Below, in pieces: positions 27,601-41,196 of a stretch of 64,000 bases of DNA. The stretch covers positions 152,615-216,614 of the forward strand of contig JALDTO010000098.1 of NCBI GenBank assembly GCA_023515725.1. Reading direction: 5' to 3'. Position numbers and translations under genes: made by a program. Every line of letters begins with the position of its first letter. The first letter of the stretch is position 1. This DNA is from Amoeboaphelidium protococcarum X5 (lineage: Eukaryota > Fungi > Aphelidiomycota). A model generated the notes under the pieces. That model saw nothing but the letters and a program-made list of their open reading frames with translations, ran no database searches and had not been told where the DNA came from.

Positions 27601-30600
27601 TATGAGGGCTCGATACTTGAAAGGCAGTACTCGACGTGTGAAAAGATTGGAGCGCTTACGAGCTAATATCACCAACATTTTATTCTTGTCCTGTAATGTT
27701 ATAACCATCGATCAGTTCAAGAATGATTCCAAGTTTACTGCGTTCATGTTATCATTTATCAAAGAAGTTGGAGCTTTCCTCTCTGATATGGAGGTGTAGA
27801 TGGAGTGGGACCACCAGATATTGAGATATTATTTCGCTCAACTTGTGGCGCGATATTACTACAAGTCTTCATCTGTGATGGAGCACCAGCAGGCTATGCC
27901 GTATGAATTACGTTTCTCTCTGTATGAGTTATTTGAGGAATGGTGTGGGTATGGACCAAAGGGCGGTGTTATGAAGGAGAGTGAGAGCAAGATGATCATG
28001 AGTGTCCTGGAACATGTCAAGGATGTTAGAGAGCGAGCAGCGTTGACAAGTGCGATGGAAGAGTAGAGGAAATCACTGGAAGTTGCATCTGCTGGTGCTA
28101 TTGCTAGTTTATGTTTTGGCACGATTATGCCACCTGCTGAGTCTGTGCTTAAAGCGCATCTAACGATTCCTTCAGTATTCGAATGGATTGATTTAACCGT
28201 GTGTCATAATGATGAGAAGATTGCGTAATATGGGGAAAGAGCGCTGAAGAATGCAATATCTGCCAATAGAAATGATATTTAGGTGTTGGAATTGGCACTG
28301 CAATCAGCATATGATCGTGATGGGTCGTCCTACCTGGCAGATATCTATTTGAAAAGTGTTGTCCATTTGCATCTGTCTGAAGGATTGTCCATCCCATTGT
28401 CACGACTCCTTTAGTTGGCGTCGTACAATTTATGGAGCGGCTAGTCTTCGTGTCGAAAGATTGCCTTAGAATTGCTCTAATATCTTGCCGAATCTAATAT
28501 TGTACAGTTGGTGATAGATGACGTGCGGTTATCTATCCTATCTCAATCTTGGCCTTCTGTTAGAAATGGCTCCTCGTTGCTTACTAAACGGTTGTTTGAG
28601 AGCTTTATTGCAGAGAGCTCGTCTTTGATGTCGGAGCTGTTTATTTAAATGTCAAAGTTGCACTCTGTCGGTCAGGAGTAGTGCTTAAATGTTATTGAGC
28701 AGTGGGCTGGGCTTATACTACTCAGCCTAGGTGGTGGTAATGACTCGCAGAATACATCAACCCTGTTTGTGCTGCATAATTTTGTTCATCTCACCGCCAA
28801 GTATGGATCTGCTTTCGAGAGTAAATTAGTGAAAATATGGACTAAGTTGGCTATGGTGTAGGATAACCTTTTGATTATCATAGAGTTTCTTATCAATGAG
28901 TGTTTGAATAAGCGAAATTCTAGCTATCTGCTCATTGCACGGAAGGTTGTTGGTATGATCGCTAGAGGTTCAATGAGCTAATAAATTCTGGATTATCTGT
29001 AGAAATAGCTTTATCCAAAGAATATGATCCCTTAGAAAAGAGGCAGTCTCAATGTTCATATGGACAATAGTTCATCGTCTCTATATATTGGCTCAATGGA
29101 ACAAGTCATTGGTGTTGATTCTGGAAAGCCCGTGTTTTCTATTGGAAATATTGTTTTGGTATTAGTTACTGATCTATTGCTGATGGCCCCTGGTACTTGT
29201 ATGTCTATATTCCCTCAAGCTATACTGCTGTCAATGTGTTATCTTGATGGTGGAATAGCGGTGGTAAAAGAGCACGCTTCTATTATTTGTCAGGCTATTT
29301 TGAAGCATCTGGCTTTGCAGATTTAGTTTGATAAGGCCGCTTTCACTAAAGTGAACTCTCTCTAAAGTGATTTTGATAAGGTTTTGAAGACTGAGAAGAG
29401 TTATTAGCTCAGTACTTAATCCAAGCAGGAACTCACTTAACCCGTTCTGAAAATGATTTTGGATGGATTTGTAGTGTCATTACATCTTGTTCATAAAGAG
29501 TCGCTACAAGATATTGGAGATTTATGCGTAAAATATGCCACTTAATGTCCTGTTCGTCATATCGCTTTCAGATCATTGCAACTATTTCAAATGGTCAATC
29601 CGGTGTTCAGTCAAAAAATGCTTGCCGATCTACTAGCGCGTTTATCGAATACTATTTGTGATTCTAATTAGGATGTTCAAGTGTTTGCTCAGGAGATTCT
29701 ACGTTCTTTGCACATGGTAGTTGGTTAGTACGATGGCGCCCGTCTTTTATTGTTCCCTCAACTATTTTGGGCGTGTTTGGAGTGTCTTAATTCCTGTGTC
29801 ATTGTTGAGTACTAGCTTAGTTTGGACATTGTGTACTTGTTCTTGTCCAGATTAGATTTCTCTAATGATCTTGCTGTTACAGTGATTTTGTCTAACCTTG
29901 GTCTGCAGTCTGTGCACGATTTGATTGGTAAAGTGGTTCAACTTCTCATGAAGGGACTGTAATCCTCCAAGACTTACAGTAAATCTGCAATGTCATTTCA
30001 TGCTTTGTGCAAGATATTGCCGACTAATTTCGCCTCTGCTCAGCCATTTGGAATGTTCAATATCCTGCTTTGTCTTGTATTTCCTATGCTTCTACAGAGC
30101 AATTAAGGGGGTAAATTGGACAAGGACCTTGTTCAGTCATTATAATCGCTAAGTAGAGTATGTCGCGAATCATCATAAATTTCTGCATTTAGTCGTCTGT
30201 TTGACTCCTTCATTAATGGAAAGCTATCGAATGCTGATGATATTGTCAAGCAATTCAGTGGAATAATGAAAGACACTTATATGTCACAGTATGATGTGAA
30301 TTTGGTGTAGTTTTGTTTGTAGATGCTTAATATGAAGGATTAGAAATTGGAGTTGATGATCTTTAAGCTGCTCAAGGCTCTTCTTATCAATATTAGTCCA
30401 GCCAGTAATTAACTTAATCAATTGACGAGTGAAAGTTTACTTCCTTTAGTTTAGCGTTTAGTATTGCCGTCTGCTACGTCTAATGAAGCATAAATCATAC
30501 TGGATGAGGTTATTCGAATTCTTTTGACATCTTCTGAGACCATTAGGCTGTCCAATGTGGCCAAAATGAAAAGTCTCGATGTACCTCTCATCTTGGAGCG

Positions 30601-31693
30601 CTGTGTCGACTCGGATGACCAATGGCTTCACCGTGATAGTGACACTTAGAAGACAAGGTCGTCATTGTCGCAGGTTATATCGTCCTATATTGCCACCAGA
30701 GTTATTGAGAGAACTGCCAGCTCTGATGCTCTTCATCAGAGGGCACTGCAAGTCCAGTAGATGTAGTAGTAGCAAGCGGAGCAGTAACAGAATACCACTG
30801 GTGTCACTCGCGGAAGACCCTCTATAACTGATATTGAAATGGAGCCTATGGATTATCAGGCAATAGTTGATCAGTTTGAGGATCTCGACTAGTTCTTTAC
30901 TGAGGATCTGAGAGCTGCCGGCTATGATATTGACAGCGACGACGACAATGGGTATCTTGATCATAGAGACTAGCTGTATTTTAATAAGTAAAAGCAGAGT
31001 GGAGCCATTAGTCCATCTAGCAAGCACTATGGATATGGAGATCAAGTTGAGCAAGACGTTTAGGATGATGCCGATGAAGAGGATCTAATGTCCGACAGTG
31101 ATGCTTTCTTTCCTCTGGATGACCTTATAGATGATCATCTGCATATTTAGCGCGAGCATGGTGTTACCGAAATGAATGTGCTGAGTATAGGAGATAAGGC
31201 TGTGGTGGAAGGTGTATCTGACCAGTAGCATACTTTATCTGGTAGTTCAAGTGAGGATGATGATTCGGATGATGCTTTCGCACTTGAAGATGCTCTAAAT
31301 CAGGTGATTGGAAAACTACCGCAGACTAAAATCGATGATCACACCAGACTTATTACTCCGTCTAGAGGTTAGCCAGCTGATGGTCAAATTCCTTAGAATG
31401 ATGGATCTGTAAAAAGTGATAGTGACGTTCAAGATGTAGGATTCCACAAAAGCTCTCAACTTATGGTCCTTTCCAGTCCTGCTGTAGTGGATATGGAGAC
31501 TGTCCTTCCGATGCCGTTAACTGCAGTGCAAGTTGTACAAAATAATGATAAGGATGATGAAGATATTGGCGATGGAGTTGAGCAGTATTTGAAAGAGGAA
31601 TAGGAAGGCTCTTCGTAAGTCAAACGGCTCAAAAGTGAGGACTCAATGATAATATCAGGTGAAGACGATACTCTCAAAAGGCCGCTCCAATGA
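24644..31693 (+). CDS. TAO3: Tao3/Mor2/Furry cell-morphogenesis scaffold of the RAM/MOR pathway (2349 aa, intronless)
   Basis: VFSEFTRHADQKI; GSDPDFDRAI; LIDGLMYWRK; LKERKVFAANFVLCRALI; ELFEEWCGYG; CPVRHIAFRSLQLF; MLADLLARLSNTI; LFPQLFWAC; acidic tail. ATG 24644 and TGA 31691 are in frame. Confidence 0.93.
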
Positions 31694-32182
31694 TGATTAA
31701 ACAGTTGATGAATATATGTAGCATTTGTTATTTCGATATTTAGAGCATATTTATCAAATGTATATGAAATGGTTTTCGTAACAATGTAGTGCAGCCAGTC
31801 AGTCGCATTAAATAACGTTGATTATCATGAAAATTATGTGAACATAACCGCGAAATCCAATGAGAAGAGGTGATAGCTTATTCAAATTGCAATAGAAGTC
31901 CATAGATTGTCGGAATAATGGGATATATCCCCAACTACTAAATGATGCTTATCTACAAATACTGTGCTGTGTTTGTGTATTGTATGTGCTCTTTTAGGCA
32001 GTTGCGACGCGATCAATTAATGTATTTTTCACATTTTAAGCGAATCACAGAAAAGGTGAGGTGCGCCTTCAAACGCGACAATTCCAATATGGGCGTTTCT
32101 AACTCCCTGCAAAATACTCTTCAATCAGGAGCATGTTTAAACTTGCGTTGGCATCCCAATTCAAAATAGAAGGTTGGCCATA

Positions 32183-32477
32183 ATGAGAAGACTCTTTTAC
32201 TATGGCACCTCTCTACATTCAGCCTTGATGTGTAGCTATATAATTGCGCACGACCAAAAACTACCATGTAAGCGTGAGCCGACGTATAATAATGCGTAAT
32301 ATATATTAAACAAAATGTATTGCGCTTGATCAAAATATAAATAGTTTATTGATCAACCGATGATTAACTTCATTAGATGTTTCATAGACGCATTGGTCAC
32401 TATTCATTTAAGCGGCTGTCTATATCTTTGTGTCAAGATCTTAGCGTTAACTTGCTTCCTCCTATTTATAGTAACTA
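32183..32477 (+). pseudogene. Severed 5' end of the Crinkler-like gene that continues at 40084 (putative intron 32268-32376)
   Basis: Joining TA 32476-77 to TA 40084-85 gives an open frame ...QRQLASSYLQQL|LLKNDKEATLSIWYSLSEQQW.... A GTAAGC donor and a TTAAC..TAG acceptor are phase-compatible. The exon 1 assignment is tentative. Confidence 0.6.
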
Positions 32478-32480
32478 CTG

Positions 32481-32909
32481 TAGGTACCTCAGCTCTCGAT
32501 ACAAAGTGGACTTTGATGGCACATTGGTGTTCTTAGGCAGCTTTTTGGCCACCAGCGCTGGCAAATCTGCAATTGAGAACCTCACTTCCAGCTCCAACAC
32601 TTATTTTAAGGCCCTTCTAACAGCAGGTGTAACTATTTTCCTCCTATGAACCTCTTTGGGTGGTAAATCTTTCGTAAAAGTGTAACGCGCCAGTAGTTTT
32701 GACACTGTGGACTATGCAAAGCCAAAACAGCGCGCAATGGTCTTTATTTACACTCCCTCTTCTCGAAATTTATATATAATAGCTTTATCTCTGTCTGATA
32801 TCATTTTTACAAAAATTGGAGTTGAAAAAAAGAAAATGAGGCGTATTAACAGGGGCTTTATTTGATTAACGCCGATCAAATCCATCGGACAAATCACTGA
32901 AACGGACTG
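32481..32909 (-). mobile_element. Tc1 element, 5' half: 30-bp TIR (32880-32909) plus transposase codons 1-108 (ATG 32804, HTH region)
   Basis: TIR CAGTCCGTTTCAGTGATTTGTCCGATGGAT is flanked by TA. The frame reads MISDRDKAIIYKFREEGVQIKTIARCFGFAQSTVSKLLARY...PSKSTLYRELRYL and breaks at a TA. Confidence 0.93.
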
Positions 32910-35000
32910 TAGATTCCAAACCATCCGGCCAAAACAGAGAGACATTTATTATATTCAAACGCTGTCTTTCATCACCTAAAATACCACAAAAATGCTAACC
33001 TTATCGCTTTTAGTCGTCACATTTGGTCAATTGCATGCAGTACAATTTTTTTGTATAAACTTTATTACTAGATGTATCACAAGGTCAAATGTCAGCCTTG
33101 TAACCTACTGGTTTCTACAAAGCGCCTTACAGGAAGGAATGCATGTGTTGCACCCTTGATTAATCTTAACAATCCCAGCTTTTCAAGCCAGCACCTGGAC
33201 AGCTCTAATAATGCAGTACAATTAGTAATAACCAGACTGAGGGCAAGGTAACATGAAAATTGGCTACATCACTTTTTAGGGAATTATAATCAAAGACTAG
33301 TTCTAACAGCCATGTTAAGACAGCTTAAGCTGCGAAGCAATATTCGCACCGGAAGTATACATTTCTTTACACATTCAGATAGCAGAGCACGTTATCCATT
33401 TTCAAAGCGAAGTATTGATGGAACACATTGATAACGAGCCATCCAGACGCACTTTTATTGAAAGCTATCTGTACGCAGCTGGATTCGTACGTGGACATAC
33501 AAAGAAGTGGAACCAGACATATCGTAAAATCTTTAAGTATAACTGATCATTAGGAATCAAGCATAAGATAGACGTATCAATTGAGCAGAGTTTTACAACG
33601 AAGGGTACCGCGTGAGGAGAACCATTAATTACGGTGGATCTACCATCAACAAACGTATATTCAAAGTACAATTAGTATAATCTTACCTCTGAATACTAGC
33701 GCTACATCTTTAAATCAACATCTCATAGAGCAAAGTAACATCCAAACGGTCGACTTCAACATACAAATGGAGATACAAGCTTGAAATCTTACATTATAAA
33801 ATCCGGAAATATGATCAGCAGTCAGCATACAGACAGACGTAGATAAAAGACAAATAGACACAGCAAAATTTTACACAAATTGCATGTACATCAATCAAGT
33901 ACATGATCTTACCAAAAGTTACACTGTAGCTCAACATCCAAAGAGGTTATGCAGTAAAGGTCTGCTTCACATGTTGCCGGAAGGCTATTCGTACTTTATG
34001 CACGATGGGCTGCATTCAAATTACAGAAGCCGAGACTACCGAGGATGATGGCGAATGTTATTCCATAAGTTGGTGATATGGAAGCATTTCATGAGTATAA
34101 ACTTGCCTATTTACATCGATATGCCAGCCTTGCTATAATAATGGCGCTTGCTGTCACTTATGATGAACAGAGAAATAAATGAGACATGCTCTCGCGTCAT
34201 GGTAACATATGGATTGTCCAGTCAACCAGAACCCCAAGATCAGAAGCCATAGCATCGCAGCAACCAAAACGCTTTCGAGCGAAACGTAGGATGACAGCTA
34301 ATGAGTGACAATTCCAACTCTTAGAGACAACTACTTCACTGGGACTTTGTCAAATATATGTTAACTGCGGCTGCAGGTAGTGCTATTATCAGCGTAAGAA
34401 TCTTACCAAACAAATGAGAAGACTTGGATTACATGACTGAATAGGTTCTTGTGCGGCAATGCAATACCATTCGCTTGAAGACATACATGAATCTATATAT
34501 AAGGAAGAAACGAGCGGGGAATGGAAAGGTCATATGACAACGGTTGAGAGGATATTCATTGGATTTCAGCACTTGAAATCACTCTGATCCCTTATGGATT
34601 AAAGTCTGGGTTTTACGGGATATCGAGAAACTATCAGCGTATTTCAAAATGATCGCTGGAATCCTGCGTTTATGCTGCGTACATGTACAGTACAACAATT
34701 TGACTCTCCGATATCATTTGATTAGTGGCGACTCTCTGCGCAGGCTGATTAACTTCATGAGAAACACTTGAAACAAGCCAGATAAAATAGCATCTGGGAA
34801 GTGAGGGGAGATATGAAACACTTCACCTGCTAGAAAGATACGCGCTGAGTCGCTGCGTTGTTAGAAGGAGTCGAGTTGGCCAAATGGTTTGGAATATCTT
34901 TGCAAATTAAGAGACTGCTCTATATGAGCGGGAACTTATGTAACTGACGACTATATACGATCCTTCGCTATCATTTAAATATAGCAGAAAATAATAGCGC

Positions 35001-36789
35001 GACTCTCTGAGAAAATCCTCATACCACACAAGGTGTGATGTACTTTAGCGAAACACCACACAAAGTGTGAGGCATTGTCAAACCGCGATAAACTAAGATT
35101 TGGCTGCTTTTAATCACACTTTTCTAGTATATTCGAGGGTCCTCTATCATTTAAAAGAAACCGCAAATTTAGAACACTTCTCGCTTGGAAAATACTGATA
35201 CCACACAAGGTGTGATGTACTTTAGCGAAACACCACACAAAGTGTGAGGCATTGTCAAACCGCAATAAAATAAGATTTGGCTGCTTTTAATCACACTTTT
35301 CTAGTAGATTCGAGGGTCCTCTATCCGTTGAAATTAACCGCAAATGCAGAACACGACTCTCTGAGAAAATACTCATACCACACAAGGTGTGATGTACTTT
35401 AGCGGAACACCACACAAAGTGTGATGCATTCACTAAAGCGATAAAATAAGATTTAGCAGCATTAAATAACACTTTTCTAGTATACTCGAACTTCCCCTAT
35501 CATTTAAAAGTAACCGCAAATGCAGAACACTTCTCGCTTGAAAAATATTCATACCACACAAGGTGTGATGTACTTTAGCGAAACGCATCACAAAGTGTGA
35601 GGCATTGTCAAACCGCAATAAAATAAGATTTAGCAGCATTAAATCACACTTTTCTAGTATATTCGAGTCTCCTCTATCATTTAAAAGTAACCGCAAATGT
35701 AAAACACTTCTCGCTTGGAAAATACTGATACCACACAAGGTGTGATACACTTTAGCGAAACGCATCACAAAGTGTGAGGCATTGTCAAACCGCAATAAAA
35801 TAAGATTTAGCAGCATTAAATCACACTTTTCTAGTATATTCGAACCTCCTCTTTCATTTAAAAGTAACCGCAAATGTAAAACACTTCTCGCTTGGAAAAT
35901 ACTGATACCACACAAGGTGTGATACACTTTAGCGGAACACCACACAAAGTGTGAGGCATTCACTAAAGCGATAAAATAAGATTTAGCTGCATTAAATCGC
36001 AATCTGCTTGTTTATTCGAACCTCCTCTTTCATTTAAAAGTAACTGCAAATGTAAAACACTTCTCGCTTGGAAAATACTGATACCACACAAGGTGTGATA
36101 CACTTTAGCGGAACACCACACAAAGTGTGAGGCATTCACTAAAGCGATAAAATAAGATTTAGCTGCATTAATTTACACTTTTCTAGTATACTCGAACCTC
36201 CCCTATCATTTAAAAGTAACCGCAAGTTTAGAACACTTCTCGCTTGGAAAATACTGATACTACACAAGGTGTGATGTACTTTAGCGAAACGCATCACAAA
36301 GTGTGAGGCATTGTCAAACCGCAATAAAATAAGATTTGGCTGCTTTTAATCACACTTTTCTAGTAGATTCGAACCTCCTCTTTCATTTAAAAGTAACCGC
36401 AAGTGCAGAACACCTCTTGCTGGGAAAATACTCATACCACACAAGGTGTGATGTACTTTAGCGAAACACCACACAAAGTGTGAGGCATTCACTAAAGCGA
36501 TAAAATAAGATTTAGCAGCATTAAATAACACTTTTCTAGTATATTCGAACTTCCCCTATCATTTAAAAGTAACCGCAAGTGCAGAACACCTCTTGCTGGG
36601 AAAATACTCATACCACACAAGGTGTGATGTACTTTAGCGAAACACCACACAAAGTGTGATGCATTGTCAAACCGCGATAAACTAAGATTTAGCTGCATTC
36701 ATTTACACTTTTCTAGTATACTCGAACTTCCCCTATCATTTAAAAGTAACCGCAAATGCAGAACACTTCTCGCTGGGAAAATATTCATA
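35001..36789. repeat. Tandem satellite, about 10 units of 176-177 bp
   Basis: The ATACCACACAAGGTGTG anchor (one base variant at 36257) recurs at 35021, 35198, 35375, 35551, 35728, 35905, 36081, 36257, 36434 and 36610. Confidence 0.97.
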
Positions 36790-37615
36790 TATCATACCAT
36801 GTGAGCGCTTACAGCGATTAGAGACATACACGGTCGTGCGCGGTAATCCGATTACTAAACTTCAACGCACTAAAAAACTCTGGCAATAGATTTTGTTTAG
36901 AGAACAGAATCATCTTAGAGCATTAGCGATGCCACGATGGAGAGGTATATGCTTCTTACAGAGTGACTCTCAGGAGTTCTACTCAGTGCTGTGATACAAG
37001 CCCTTAGAACAGTCATCAAAACACACGTTGCACTCCTCCTGTACATAATCAGGTACATTGTGTTAAGATAAAACCAAAAAGGTAAATTATATCTTTCGAT
37101 AATACTGAATTTATTCACAACTGAGAAGAAAATGTCCTTCACACTTCAACCTAAGCCACTCGGATCAGTGACACCTGAACCGATAACCGATGCTCTGGAA
37201 CACCAACCTTCACACATTGGGCATCTTAAATTCTATATCGTAGTAGACATTAAAAGCAGTTGAATTATGGTAACTTTTAACGGGTACAATTTCACAAACT
37301 AACGAATGGAAACTTTACGGGAGAAAGGCAAATTGCTCGCTTCCACCAGACGTCAAGCGTCAATGTTGTATGTAGGCTAATTGCACTTTGGCGGTATTCG
37401 TAAATCGCTCCTGCAGATGTTGATTATTGTGCGAAACGGAACAGCTCACGATTTAAGTTGAGCTACAAACCTCAAAACTATTTCCTTTTCGATTTAAAGT
37501 TAGGAGGCGTGAATTTCCTTGTTCGAATGTGAAACAGATTAGATCGATCCATCCACCATGTCTCAAGCTATTCAATGCACATCAGTCTTTCAAATTGAAC
37601 TTATTTCAACTAAAT

Positions 37616-39169
37616 ATGGTATTAACTGCATAAGAAAAGAAGAATTTATTAAGCATTCTGGCTGGTTATACTAAGGATCAGGTGCTGTAAGTTGGTTAAC
37701 GCGCTGGTTTGAATGAGATGGTTGGTACAAAGTCTAAGCTCACCGAAAAGGTTGTGAATGCTGGGCTTTCAGTGAAACATTTATAGTTCTTCTTTGTCAA
37801 TGGATTCTCCGAAGATTAAACTACTCGGCTTCTGTCCTAGATTGGTCGTACATTCTGCCAGAAGTTTGGCATTGCTCCCATCAATGATTAGTGGGTCCCT
37901 TTGTGTGGTCTGGCTGCTGCCATCATGGCGAAACAGCATTCAATGGACTGGGCTAGATTACAAACAAGTGACGCGCTGAATTAGGCCTCATGTTCTCTAA
38001 GTTCTACCTAAGATGAGTTGTTGAACACTACGCATAAAGCTGTCAGGTTGGACACCGTGTTCTTCATCATCTAGTGGTACAATGGTGTTGCGTTTGCTGT
38101 TACTTTGGTTCATCAGCTGTTGACTGAAGTTCGTCCTAATCCGCGTCTTCAGTAAGATGGTGCTCAGTCTCCTCAAAATGATGGTCCTTTACTTGGTAAC
38201 GTGGCCTAAACTCCGGCGTTCTCCGAGTAGTCTGAAGCGCCTCAATTAAATTCGTTCACCATGGCACTAACAGAGGCCGGATAACACGATGTTGCTGCGA
38301 TGCGCAGCTTTTCTGTATAAAAGTGCGCGATTCAAGACTTTGCGGGGAGAATAATCTCGCATCTTGGAAAATCCTTCACTCTCGATAAAGTAGAAAATGC
38401 TTTATAATCAAATCTTGGGGAACTTCCTGACCCTCTGTCATGGTGGAAATAAGCAAGACAGTCTGCACCATGTCTGGTGGATGAGTTTGCTCTTTGTAAG
38501 ACTGTGTTTGTCATTTCTAAGCTGTTGGGTGGACAGTGCAGCGTATCTCTAATTACCACTATCTGTGTTGAAGCATTAAAGTACTTATCAGTGCAGTAGA
38601 CAGTTTATTATATTGCCAACATACTGAATGGACTGGGACTGGTGAGAACTTTGGACGCGTGCTGTGTATGCATACGTGCATCTGCACATCTGGCGGTTTC
38701 AATCAAACTTTTTAAAGAATATGATAAGAGCTCTGGTGGACTCTGGCTCGCAGAAGCATTTGGTGAAGACTTAATTGCCGGTTGCTTCAGAGGTGAACTA
38801 CCTCAGATGCTGTTGTTCTGGTAATACGCAGCAAACAACCAAAGAATTACTGGCATGATCTGCGCTCTGTTGGCAGGAGTAGGTTCCGCCATGCTGTTCA
38901 AGGGAGACTTAACAGCAGTAAAAGAACGTGCAAAACATTTGTCCGTGTCAGAGTTGCTGAGCGCCTCAGAGAATGGCGAATGCAAGGCACTGCTTGAGCA
39001 TTTCAAGGGTGAAATGAAGCCAGTGGAGTCTGAATTGAGTATGGCATTCACTCATTTGATGAAATTAAATGGCCGTGCGTCTGTAGGCTTCAGAGGTATT
39101 GAAGACAATAACTAAGAGCTTCCATCAGAGTGCGCTCTCCTTGGATATCCACACACATCTGAATTGTGA
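37616..39169 (+). CDS. Hypothetical protein with an N-terminal SAP-like motif (517 aa)
   Basis: Uninterrupted frame from ATG 37616 to TGA 39167. YTKDQVLQVGQRAGLNEMVGTKSKLTEKVV resembles a SAP helix-extension-helix. Confidence 0.75.
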
Positions 39170-39299
39170 TTATTTGATTAAACGTGTACATAACATCTTA
39201 ATTTCGTCTTCATTAGCGCTTGCTTGATGAATATTAATCTATTAGATTATAAAAAATAGAATCGCGTTTATATACTTGTCAACTATTGAAATTCAGCTA

Positions 39300-40080
39300 C
39301 AGTCCGTTTCAGTGATTTGTCCGATGGATCAACAAAGCGATATAAATTCATATAGCGTAACAAATATTAATAATCAATAATCTATAGCTTTACCCTCACT
39401 TTTAATAACTTCATGGCATCTATTTTCAAAACTCAGAATTAAATTCTGGCAAGTTTCGATGGAGATATTACGCCAAACCTCTTCAAACTAGCTGATTAGC
39501 TGCTGTCTGGAAGTAGGGGCACCAAATTTATCCACCCTCGCAGCTTTAGCAATTGCCCACATATTCTCTATAGGATTCAAATCCGGAGACTGCGCTGGCC
39601 AATCCAAGCGCTGGACCCCCTATTCGTCCAAAAAGGTGGTCACTACCATTGCCTTATGGCATGGTGCATTATCCTGCATATAGGTGAACTAAGTACCAGA
39701 GACCTCTTCCAACTCCTTCAGGCAGGGTATTACTACCTCCTCTAACAATACCAGGTATTATTCCTTCCGCATAGTGCCATCTATAGGAATAATCGGACCT
39801 GGGCCGTAAATCGACACACAACCCCAAAACATGACCGAAAATCCACCCGCCTGAACTTGAACATTGGTGGGCAAATTTAGACCTTCTCGACCATGCTTAA
39901 TCCATTGCCGAACCTGTCTTCCTTTCTAGATGGCTTAAACTGAACATTCATCCGAGAAGCAGATCAGCCGCATAGCTTCTTGACCCTGTTGTATCATGCC
40001 TTACGCGAACTAGACCCTCTTAACTTGATTTCTGGCACTTATGAGTGGTTTATTTTTCAGAATGACGCTGTCAAAGCCTA
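39300..40080 (-). mobile_element. Tc1 element, 3' half: DD34E catalytic domain (stop 39374-39376) plus 30-bp TIR (39300-39329)
   Basis: KPLISARNQVKRVQFA; ICFSDEC; VMFWGCVS; MQDNAPCH...WPAQSPDLNPIENMW, with 34 residues between D and E. The TIR is identical to the one at 32880-32909 and is preceded by TA. Confidence 0.95.
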
Positions 40081-40083
40081 CTG

Positions 40084-41196
40084 TATTGCTGAAGAATGAC
40101 AAAGAAGCAACTCTTTCGATTTGGTACAGTTTAAGCGAGTAATAATGGAGCGCCTCATATGGTGATTTGGGCCGTGATATATATAAAATTTTTTGCTCTT
40201 CTGCGTAGTTCCCGCTAAAATCTAATGTCGACGTGCTGAATGGTCTAATTGGGTTAGATGTTGAAGGTGAATAGGCTTATAGGCAGTATCGCAATGTTGC
40301 CGACGCGTTGATTCGGGATCCGGTGTAGAATCGTAAAATTGATGCTGTTTGCCAACTGGTGTAATAGACTATTGCCTTTTGCCGAGACAATCCTTATAGT
40401 AGAGTACCATTTATTTTTGTTGATGGTTCATCTGGGATAGGAAAGACACAGTTGGCATTTTGTCTCTTGCAAAAGTGTCGTGGCTAGTAATCAGTTGGCA
40501 GCTCGAATACACCTATTTGTTATCTATTACCTACGGGTCAGGACGAGTACTCTTAGCCGATTTATCGATGATATGACAATGCTAGCTCTCTATTCTCCTA
40601 GTGCATAGACAAAGATTTGGCTAATTTGAATGATAATCCGAGTATAACCATTCTCCGACACAGTTCTCTGTTCACTTTTGGCTTCCTGAAGAATTTGCTA
40701 TCATAGTATGCGTTGCCACATCTGTAATCAAGTATGTATACTGGCAATTTTAAACTTACTAAAGTTGCGATTGAGGCTTGAAAGTTATAGACAATTAAAG
40801 ATTTACTTACAGAGAGTCATGTATCGTCGTCTGCATCCTACTGTGTTCCGGTGATTATTATTGACGAATATGCGACGGCCAGATCCAACGATAGTTCCTA
40901 TGATATTCGCAAGTGGAGATTTATGCGCAACGTTTGCAGAGCTTTGCCGTGTTGTCTAGTGTTGATGGGAATCAATTCTTCTGCAGTGAATCTTATTTCC
41001 CACGCCTCCTCTAGTAGATCTGATGACGGTTCCCTGTGGTGTCATGTTATTGCTGATTTGCCCAAGTTGTCATACGATTCCTTAATGTATTTGTCTAATA
41101 GAGCTACACAATTTCCTGAAAATAGTCAGTTTTGCCAACTGCTGCTACATTCAAGGCCCCTCTTTGCCAGATTTGCGTATTAGTACTTTGATGATC

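Follow-up and report, generated by a model that had tools for sequence, protein, structure and literature searches.

A circularly permuted Tc1-like transposon encloses a satellite-bearing tandem unit between two TACTGTA joints in Amoeboaphelidium protococcarum

A 64-kb stretch of the genome of Amoeboaphelidium protococcarum X5, an aphelid that parasitises algae (positions 152615-216614 of contig C98; the whole stretch is called the window, and coordinates refer to it unless a contig is named) harbours a Tc1-like transposon which is split at an internal TA dinucleotide, and whose two halves lie in swapped order on either side of a 6386-bp block (32912-39297), termed the cargo. The cargo corresponds to a tandem unit that is found in a different order elsewhere in the assembly (23.6 Mb in 346 pieces, ∼40% GC), and both outer joints of the structure read TACTGTA on the same strand. 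The left joint borders a fragment of a second transposon, designated T2, while the right joint leads directly into host DNA. UAR codons are decoded as glutamine in A. protococcarum (PMC5304391), and code 6 denotes here a translation in which TAA and TAG are read as glutamine. The features of the locus are given below, where ORF is open reading frame and TIR is terminal inverted repeat.

31500-32017: left host flank X, host-like up to the TA at 32018-19; C142:78217-79730 (minus strand) matches window positions 30500-32017 at 89%
32020-32475, plus strand: truncated 5' end of T2, its first ∼456-457 bp, with the target TA at 32018-19; the first three bases are ATG, not CAG
32476-32482: left joint J1, consisting of a TA internal to T2, CTG, and a TA internal to Tc1
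32483-32909 (427 bp), minus strand: Tc1 half B, with codons 1-107 of the transposase (ATG at 32804) and a TIR at 32880-32909; the element end faces right
32910-32911: TA next to cargo part L, Tc1 target duplication
32912-35010: cargo part L, no convincing gene (ORF screen only)
35011-36789: satellite, 10.1 copies of a 177-bp unit
36790-39297, plus strand: cargo part R, containing an ORF that encodes ∼516-581 aa under code 6 (37424/37616-39166)
39298-39299: TA next to cargo part R, Tc1 target duplication
39300-40078 (779 bp), minus strand: Tc1 half A, with a TIR at 39300-39329, a TGA stop at 39374-76 and codons 108-342 (39377-40080, including the joint TA at 40079-80)
40079-40085: right joint J2, consisting of a TA internal to Tc1, CTG, and a host TA
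40086-40846: right host flank Y; C142:77309-78072 (minus strand) matches at 90%

Both halves of Tc1 end at one shared internal TA, which reads AAAGCC-TA in half A and TA-GGTACC in half B, and they rejoin exactly into an element of 1208 bp, as had been claimed in an earlier reading of this DNA made from its letters alone (the original prediction). The rejoined minus-strand ORF contains 11 in-frame TAA/TAG codons before its terminal TGA. The transposase announced earlier is borne out, DD34E spacing included, but it is intact and 342 aa long only under code 6. When the rejoined halves are translated with code 6, the catalytic residues D151, D244 and E279, located by eye, are separated by 92 and 34 residues. 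Database searches of the transposase were made with those stop-free pieces that do not span the split; the piece 39491-39619 alone matched PF13358 (DDE_3) with E=1.8e-5, and the same domain scored 43.2 bits (cut-off 28.6) at C98:192147-192569 when five TAA/TAG codons were read through. The 33-nt arms at 32880-32912 and 39297-39329 each comprise the 30-nt TIR, the TA and a single base of flank; they show 100% complementarity and point towards the cargo from both sides, in agreement with the predicted orientation. The TIRs start with CAGT and a TA target duplication is present; by these features, its DDE_3 domain and its catalytic spacing, the element is assigned to the DD34E (Tc1-like) group of the Tc1/mariner superfamily.

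This Tc1 is single-copy in the assembly, with only one partial relative of 66% identity elsewhere, and in a decayed relative on C135 the alignment continues across the split region. A genome-wide profile search with read-through located at least 17 DDE_3 loci, every one with in-frame TAA/TAG. Metagenomes were scanned for the Tc1 break site, either unsplit or bearing a scar, and separately for the TIR, and neither scan returned a match.

The sequence TACTGTA is present at 32476-32482 and 40079-40085, just as predicted, and its interpretation as a Tc1/Sleeping Beauty-type excision footprint fits the canonical form, i.e. cag/ctg between TA duplicates, given in the legend to Fig. 5D of PMC5224488. 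The likeness to footprints of this type lies in three element-derived bases between two TAs at both joints; the difference is that the scars here unite DNAs which were never neighbours, instead of resealing one donor site. Both scars may record the excision of an element formerly present at each site, as the TA on both Tc1 halves and a similar scar nearby in the homoeolog (see below) indirectly suggest; no such element remains there. Comparison of the joints shows that three distinct TA sites took part, lying within T2, within Tc1 and in host DNA. It also shows Tc1 to have been opened at the internal TA that is now carried by both halves, a duplication which only the integration of a TA-targeting element would yield. 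Tc1 and Tc3 of Caenorhabditis elegans cut with a 2-nt stagger, and the 3-nt scars therefore point to a stagger like that of Sleeping Beauty.

The motif itself is not enriched, as TACWGTA occurs at 10 sites in the 64 kb against 8.6 expected. By our estimate from base composition, the chance of a scar at the exact break point is ∼2e-3 for each joint and ∼5e-6 for both, and two independent truncations sharing one TA would contribute a further factor of ∼1/1200 on top of this. That two unrelated Tc1 copies, independently truncated, flank the unit by chance is conceivable as a general possibility; however, the halves complement each other exactly at the TA they share, with no bases overlapping or missing, their rejoined ORF is intact, their arms match at 33 of 33 positions, and the element is single-copy, which leaves this origin next to impossible.

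The reality of the structure was assessed from Logan contigs of four separately assembled public runs, all from one sample. Each of these runs yielded a 963-nt contig that matches 39300-40262 with 0 differences and crosses the Tc1 break site and J2 without branching, which supports J2 and suggests that neither an unsplit Tc1 nor another allele of the right flank is common in the sample, rare variants being dropped by contigs. The joint between part L, the TA and the TIR is visible as loose ends in the contigs of runs X3 and X4. In Logan gene calls the exact 90-aa ORF across J1 had no record, a result that is uninformative as records from the genome itself may be excluded. Runs X7-X9, which come from another sample under the same species label, contain none of the 31-mers from 39000-41000, including those of the unique host flank, and so supply no empty site; this indicates that the two samples are well diverged.

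A misassembly or chimeric consensus would draw on the fact that the cargo is a multi-copy repeat ∼99% alike among its copies, that other copies contain joins made of N, and that the read-contig check covers J2, not J1. Against this, the window is free of N, J2 is crossed by the 963-nt contig in all four runs, X and Y are adjacent in the homoeolog described below, and an assembler cannot create CTG between two TAs at both ends. An artefact of this kind is thus considered very improbable.

The origin of the cargo is evident from its matches elsewhere. Part L is 99% identical to C206:7474-9463 and C240:1-1973, and part R is 99% identical to C206:9466-11959 and to C240. In C206 (minus strand) and C240 the order is R (36.8-39.3 kb), TA, L (32.9-35 kb), with a single TA at the position that Tc1 occupies in the window, so that the empty Tc1 site, ..TTCAGC-TA-GATTCC.., is present in both. 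C206 starts with unique DNA, which is followed by satellite, R, TA, L and satellite; beyond a run of N, R appears again at the scaffold end, a layout which indicates the end of a tandem array with the period R-L-satellite. Further copies of the unit, 98-100% identical to the window, occur in C193, C125, C199 and C187, and the last ∼110 bp of part L (34791-34900) travel with the satellite at other loci. These comparisons show the cargo to be one 6.4-kb period of a multi-copy tandem unit with a plain TA at the R/L joint. The TA on both sides in the window, together with the empty site elsewhere, shows that Tc1 was inserted at this TA. By the same alignments, the order L-satellite-R between the Tc1 ends is shown to be a circular permutation of the array unit plus Tc1. 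The cargo differs by 0.8-1.2% from the copies in C206 and C240, which suggests that the insertion event is not brand new.

The original prediction had called for a donor locus with the unpermuted order; C206 and C240 have that order, but without Tc1. It had also taken the permutation as the mark of a circular intermediate. The insert is indeed permuted with respect to C206 and C240; a tandem donor, however, gives an identical picture. The Logan contig for R continues from 39299 into the start of L, and its k-mer abundance is ∼5x that of the flanks in the four runs, a value to be taken as a rough hint only, Logan k-mer depths not being copy numbers. The excess could reflect a collapsed array or extrachromosomal copies.

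Owing to the tandem nature of the donor, a route without any circle has to be weighed, in which Tc1 with a TA-targeting element nested inside it was present in two adjacent array units, and the linear stretch between the two nested copies was moved by double excision and capture, or else in the form of a composite transposon that later lost its terminal copies by excision. One period cut out of an array looks like an opened circle. However, two Tc1 and two nested copies would be needed, and a Tc1 or a scar should remain in the array, whereas the assembly contains no other Tc1 and the R/L joints seen are clean single TAs. This linear route is therefore regarded as unlikely. A circle is favoured over it as it needs one Tc1 only and leaves no scarred donor, and also because no other Tc1 occurs in the assembly or at appreciable frequency in the contigs, all observed R/L joints being clean.

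Several further observations concern the tandem unit. It is not fully assembled, as C206 contains a gap of 6400 N and ends inside the unit, and several other copies, 98-100% identical, are on small contigs. A stretch of C206, 'Z' (C206:508-6907), was rejected as a genuine insert since it is a run of N, and odd joints in C240 and at C98:398163 were likewise rejected as real, being single-N scaffold joins. About 205 kb from the insert on the same contig, C98:395939-398662 has unique DNA at either end and satellite inside this on both sides, enclosing the first 1.1 kb of R (98%) followed by a single N, and may represent a second anchored array with its content hidden behind the N. For the ORF of part R, no Pfam match above the cut-off was obtained with its two longest stop-free pieces. 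Part L carries a 20-nt inverted repeat (32913-32932 and 34876-34895, 90% complementary), which bounds it exactly, beginning with its first base and ending immediately ahead of the satellite. Part L could thus be an ancient TIR element in its own right, although no TA duplication is visible. Within R, ∼155 bp (37061-37217) have copies of 90-93% identity at 13 or more loci (on C264, C162, C57, C146, C150, C135, C205 and others) and look like a small dispersed repeat or a miniature transposable element of the inverted-repeat type (MITE).

The DNA to the left of J1 was tried as unique host DNA or as part of a split gene, and both were rejected on finding it to be a fragment of a repeated transposon. 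The T2 family has at least a dozen copies, of which those compared are ∼87-96% alike, and the fragment in the window is ∼87-95% identical to them. Full T2 is ∼2.79 kb long and TA-flanked, with TIRs of ∼30 bp; both of its ends read CAG in all six full copies, hence the TIR is imperfect at base 2. The full copies are located as follows.

G000:C200:∼103812-106599, minus strand: full T2
C154:∼427570-430354, minus strand: full T2
C244:∼442572-445345, plus strand: full T2
C211: full T2
C264, 1.90 Mb: full T2
C98, 635-638 kb: full T2

The 3' piece of the long code-6 ORF of T2 (copy in C200, L045:7205-7546, minus strand) matches PF07282, the Cas12f1-like TNB domain, with E=1.6e-11 and 44.6 bits (cut-off 26.3), while the other large pieces gave no match in Pfam or PDB sequence searches. 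The translation displays the RuvC-like motifs GIDVN, PEYRTSQ and RDLNAARNI, and in the C200 copy a TGA separates the RuvC-I part from the TNB part, which could be due to an intron or to decay. The TNB match identifies T2 as a Fanzor-type (TnpB-like) transposon, as far as sequence similarity can tell. T2 shares with the Fanzor-bearing TIR transposons the TNB domain, TA flanks and TIRs of ∼30 bp, and its translation has motifs resembling those of RuvC; it differs from them in that both ends read CAG. The window retains no more than its first ∼457 bp, and the T2 nuclease has no evident part in the joints. Two copies are interrupted, one by an insertion of ∼9 kb (C146:654657-663998, query overlap ∼10 bp) and the other by one of ∼170 bp (C98:637347-638021, overlap ∼6 bp).

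At the break site, other T2 copies read AGTAAC-TA-CTTGAAC without interruption, as compared to AGTAAC-TA-CTG-TA-GGTACC in the window. Since T2 ends in CAG on both sides, the scar expected after its excision is fixed for each orientation. T2 in plus orientation was accordingly rejected as the cutter, as CAG...CAG ends would give TACAGTA and not TACTGTA, while a T2-type element in minus orientation would be predicted from its ends to give CTG at both joints.

Both host flanks recur in the homoeologous region on C142, in which X and Y are ∼144 bp apart. This proximity indicates that both joints belong to one locus. Between the T2 site and the TA of Y, C142 has ∼115-144 bp of host sequence that is absent from the window; the host side of the right joint, TA-TTGCTGAAG, aligns with TA-TAGCTGTTA in C142. 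The C142 spacer has no other occurrence in the genome, and its interpretation as a decayed relic of T2 was rejected, the local alignment score of 35 falling below the shuffled mean of 39. A tblastx comparison revealed no similarity between T2 and the right flank. Compared with a simple insertion, the window by these alignments lacks ∼2.3 kb of T2 together with the C142-type host stretch, and the missing DNA implies that the insert was connected to two TA sites which were not the same. The empty site proposed originally, AGTAAC-TA-TTGCTGAAG, was thus never contiguous, since its left side is an internal TA of T2 and its right side is host DNA. Nor does the claimed rejoining of the outer flanks into one reading frame exceed chance, as only TGA acts as a stop and three of the six frames are open. 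Beside the same locus, C142 at ∼78236-78242 (within G000:C142:76717-81230) reads CTCTTTTA-CTG-TA-GGTGG as compared to CTCTTTTA-GGCAG in the window (∼31996-32003); this separate TA-CTG-TA scar indicates that such scars arise in this lineage.

In the originally predicted route, a circle of Tc1 plus cargo was opened at the internal TA by a second Tc1 and formed a cointegrate with the locus, and both flanking copies were later excised. To our knowledge, cut-and-paste elements make no cointegrates through transposition, and the fusion would therefore need homologous recombination between a TA-targeting element inside the Tc1 of the circle and a chromosomal copy of that element, after which the two flanking direct copies would each leave TA-CTG-TA. 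This course yields the same final sequence and accounts for CTG on the same strand in both scars, which two direct T2-type copies in minus orientation would also give. However, the chromosomal copy would have to lie between the internal TA of T2 and the host TA, which were never neighbours, so that an earlier deletion is required; two more independent clean excisions are needed as well, and no such element remains. Recombination followed by two excisions is thus doubtful as the origin of the insert.

Taken together, these observations lead us to prefer, tentatively and at somewhat below an even chance, the explanation that a circle consisting of one array unit plus Tc1 was opened at a TA-targeting element nested in Tc1, and was joined to two chromosome ends made by transposase. 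One period of the array would leave as a circle via recombination between adjacent units. The sole Tc1 of the genome, a DD34E element of 1208 bp, inserted at the TA of the R/L joint, as shown above, and would have done so either before or after circle formation; a second TA-targeting element with CAG/CTG ends would come to sit in the internal TA of Tc1. Excision of this nested element would linearise the circle as B-L-satellite-R-A, leaving 3-nt overhangs. Transposase would likewise make two similar ends in the chromosome, at the internal TA of T2 and at the host TA ∼2.4 kb beyond, with the loss of the stretch between them, and end joining of the compatible overhangs would seal both joints as TA-CTG-TA. 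The net result would be the relocation of a satellite array, an orphan gene and Tc1, the last still being single-copy. The 17 or more DDE_3 loci provide possible sources of transposase, and the candidates for the cutter are a second Tc1 copy, another canonical CAG...CTG element, or a minus-oriented element of the T2 type.

Several points weigh against the opening and capture of a circle. The circle is deduced, none having been observed, and Logan contigs cannot distinguish it from an array; the nested element behind the cuts is gone from the sequence; and three transposase-made sites must be open at one time. Support from read contigs reaches J2 and the L-TA-TIR joint, not J1 or the joint between R, the TA and Tc1, and more than one unit may lie between the Tc1 halves, short-read contigs being unable to count units. 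Moreover, the rival routes end in identical sequence. Direct end joining is indistinguishable from recombination followed by two excisions, and our choice of the former, which involves a single burst of cutting, is a preference.

The order of events could also be reversed. A Tc1 circle would first have given rise to a permuted Tc1 at this locus, with its ends next to each other; transposase would then have cut these inward-facing ends, and they would have attacked an R-TA-L circle at its TA, so that the chromosome played the part of the transposon. The TA duplicated at either edge of the cargo would be explained in this way. Circular forms of Tc1 have been documented (Radice and Emmons 1993, cited in PMC5224488), as has reversed-ends transposition for maize Ac/Ds (PMC3744419, PMC4270019). 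It nevertheless still requires the integration of a circle sealed by footprints, plus one extra step. Besides, we know of no reversed-ends reaction of this type for Tc1-type elements, and this sequence of events is considered highly unlikely.

The ingredients of the preferred explanation, capture of a circle opened at Tc1, are all known, namely excision footprints, circles from tandem repeats, the idea of satellite reintegration, and maize rearrangements that combine ends. Alternative transposition of maize Ac/Ds, involving reversed ends or sister chromatids, and maize composite insertions resemble the present case in bringing together ends or cuts that stem from separate sites or separate copies; the resulting insertions, deletions and duplications bear the hallmarks of transposons at their joints (PMC4270019, PMC3744419). 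They differ in that Ac/Ds is a plant hAT element which makes 8-bp duplications and whose copies normally stay at the joints, whereas the window displays scars only, together with a permuted insert. The spread of satellites through circles formed by intrastrand recombination and then reintegrated is a long-standing proposal, made for example in the Discussion of PMC3411249. The likeness to that proposal is the presence of an array unit with its satellite at a new euchromatic site; the difference is that the proposal, as worded in that Discussion, relies on homologous recombination via short similarity, while the joints here are TA scars of the transposase type, with a permuted transposon as a marker. 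The extrachromosomal Tc1 circles of Radice and Emmons (1993), as they are cited in PMC5224488, consist of the element alone, in contrast to the circle envisaged here, in which host DNA carries the element. No comparable insert, permuted and sealed by footprints, came up in the literature search.

The insert is a one-off structural fossil and not a system, but an unusually informative one. The relocation of satellites and genes is usually inferred without evidence at the level of the joints, and the insert provides a rare sequence record of the movement of such a block. Its single-copy transposon serves as a built-in marker, in that the permutation marks one closed period of the array and the two scars mark breaks of the transposase type. 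It is possible, though on balance rather unlikely, that circles from satellite arrays re-enter chromosomes at breaks made by Tc1-type transposases as a wider process, seeding islands of satellite or genes in gene-dense DNA with a cargo that does not lie between the ends of an element, and that this route partly accounts for the numerous islands of 176-178-bp satellite in the genome. If such a process is general, cut-and-paste transposases would reshape genomes not only by moving themselves but also by supplying compatible breaks.

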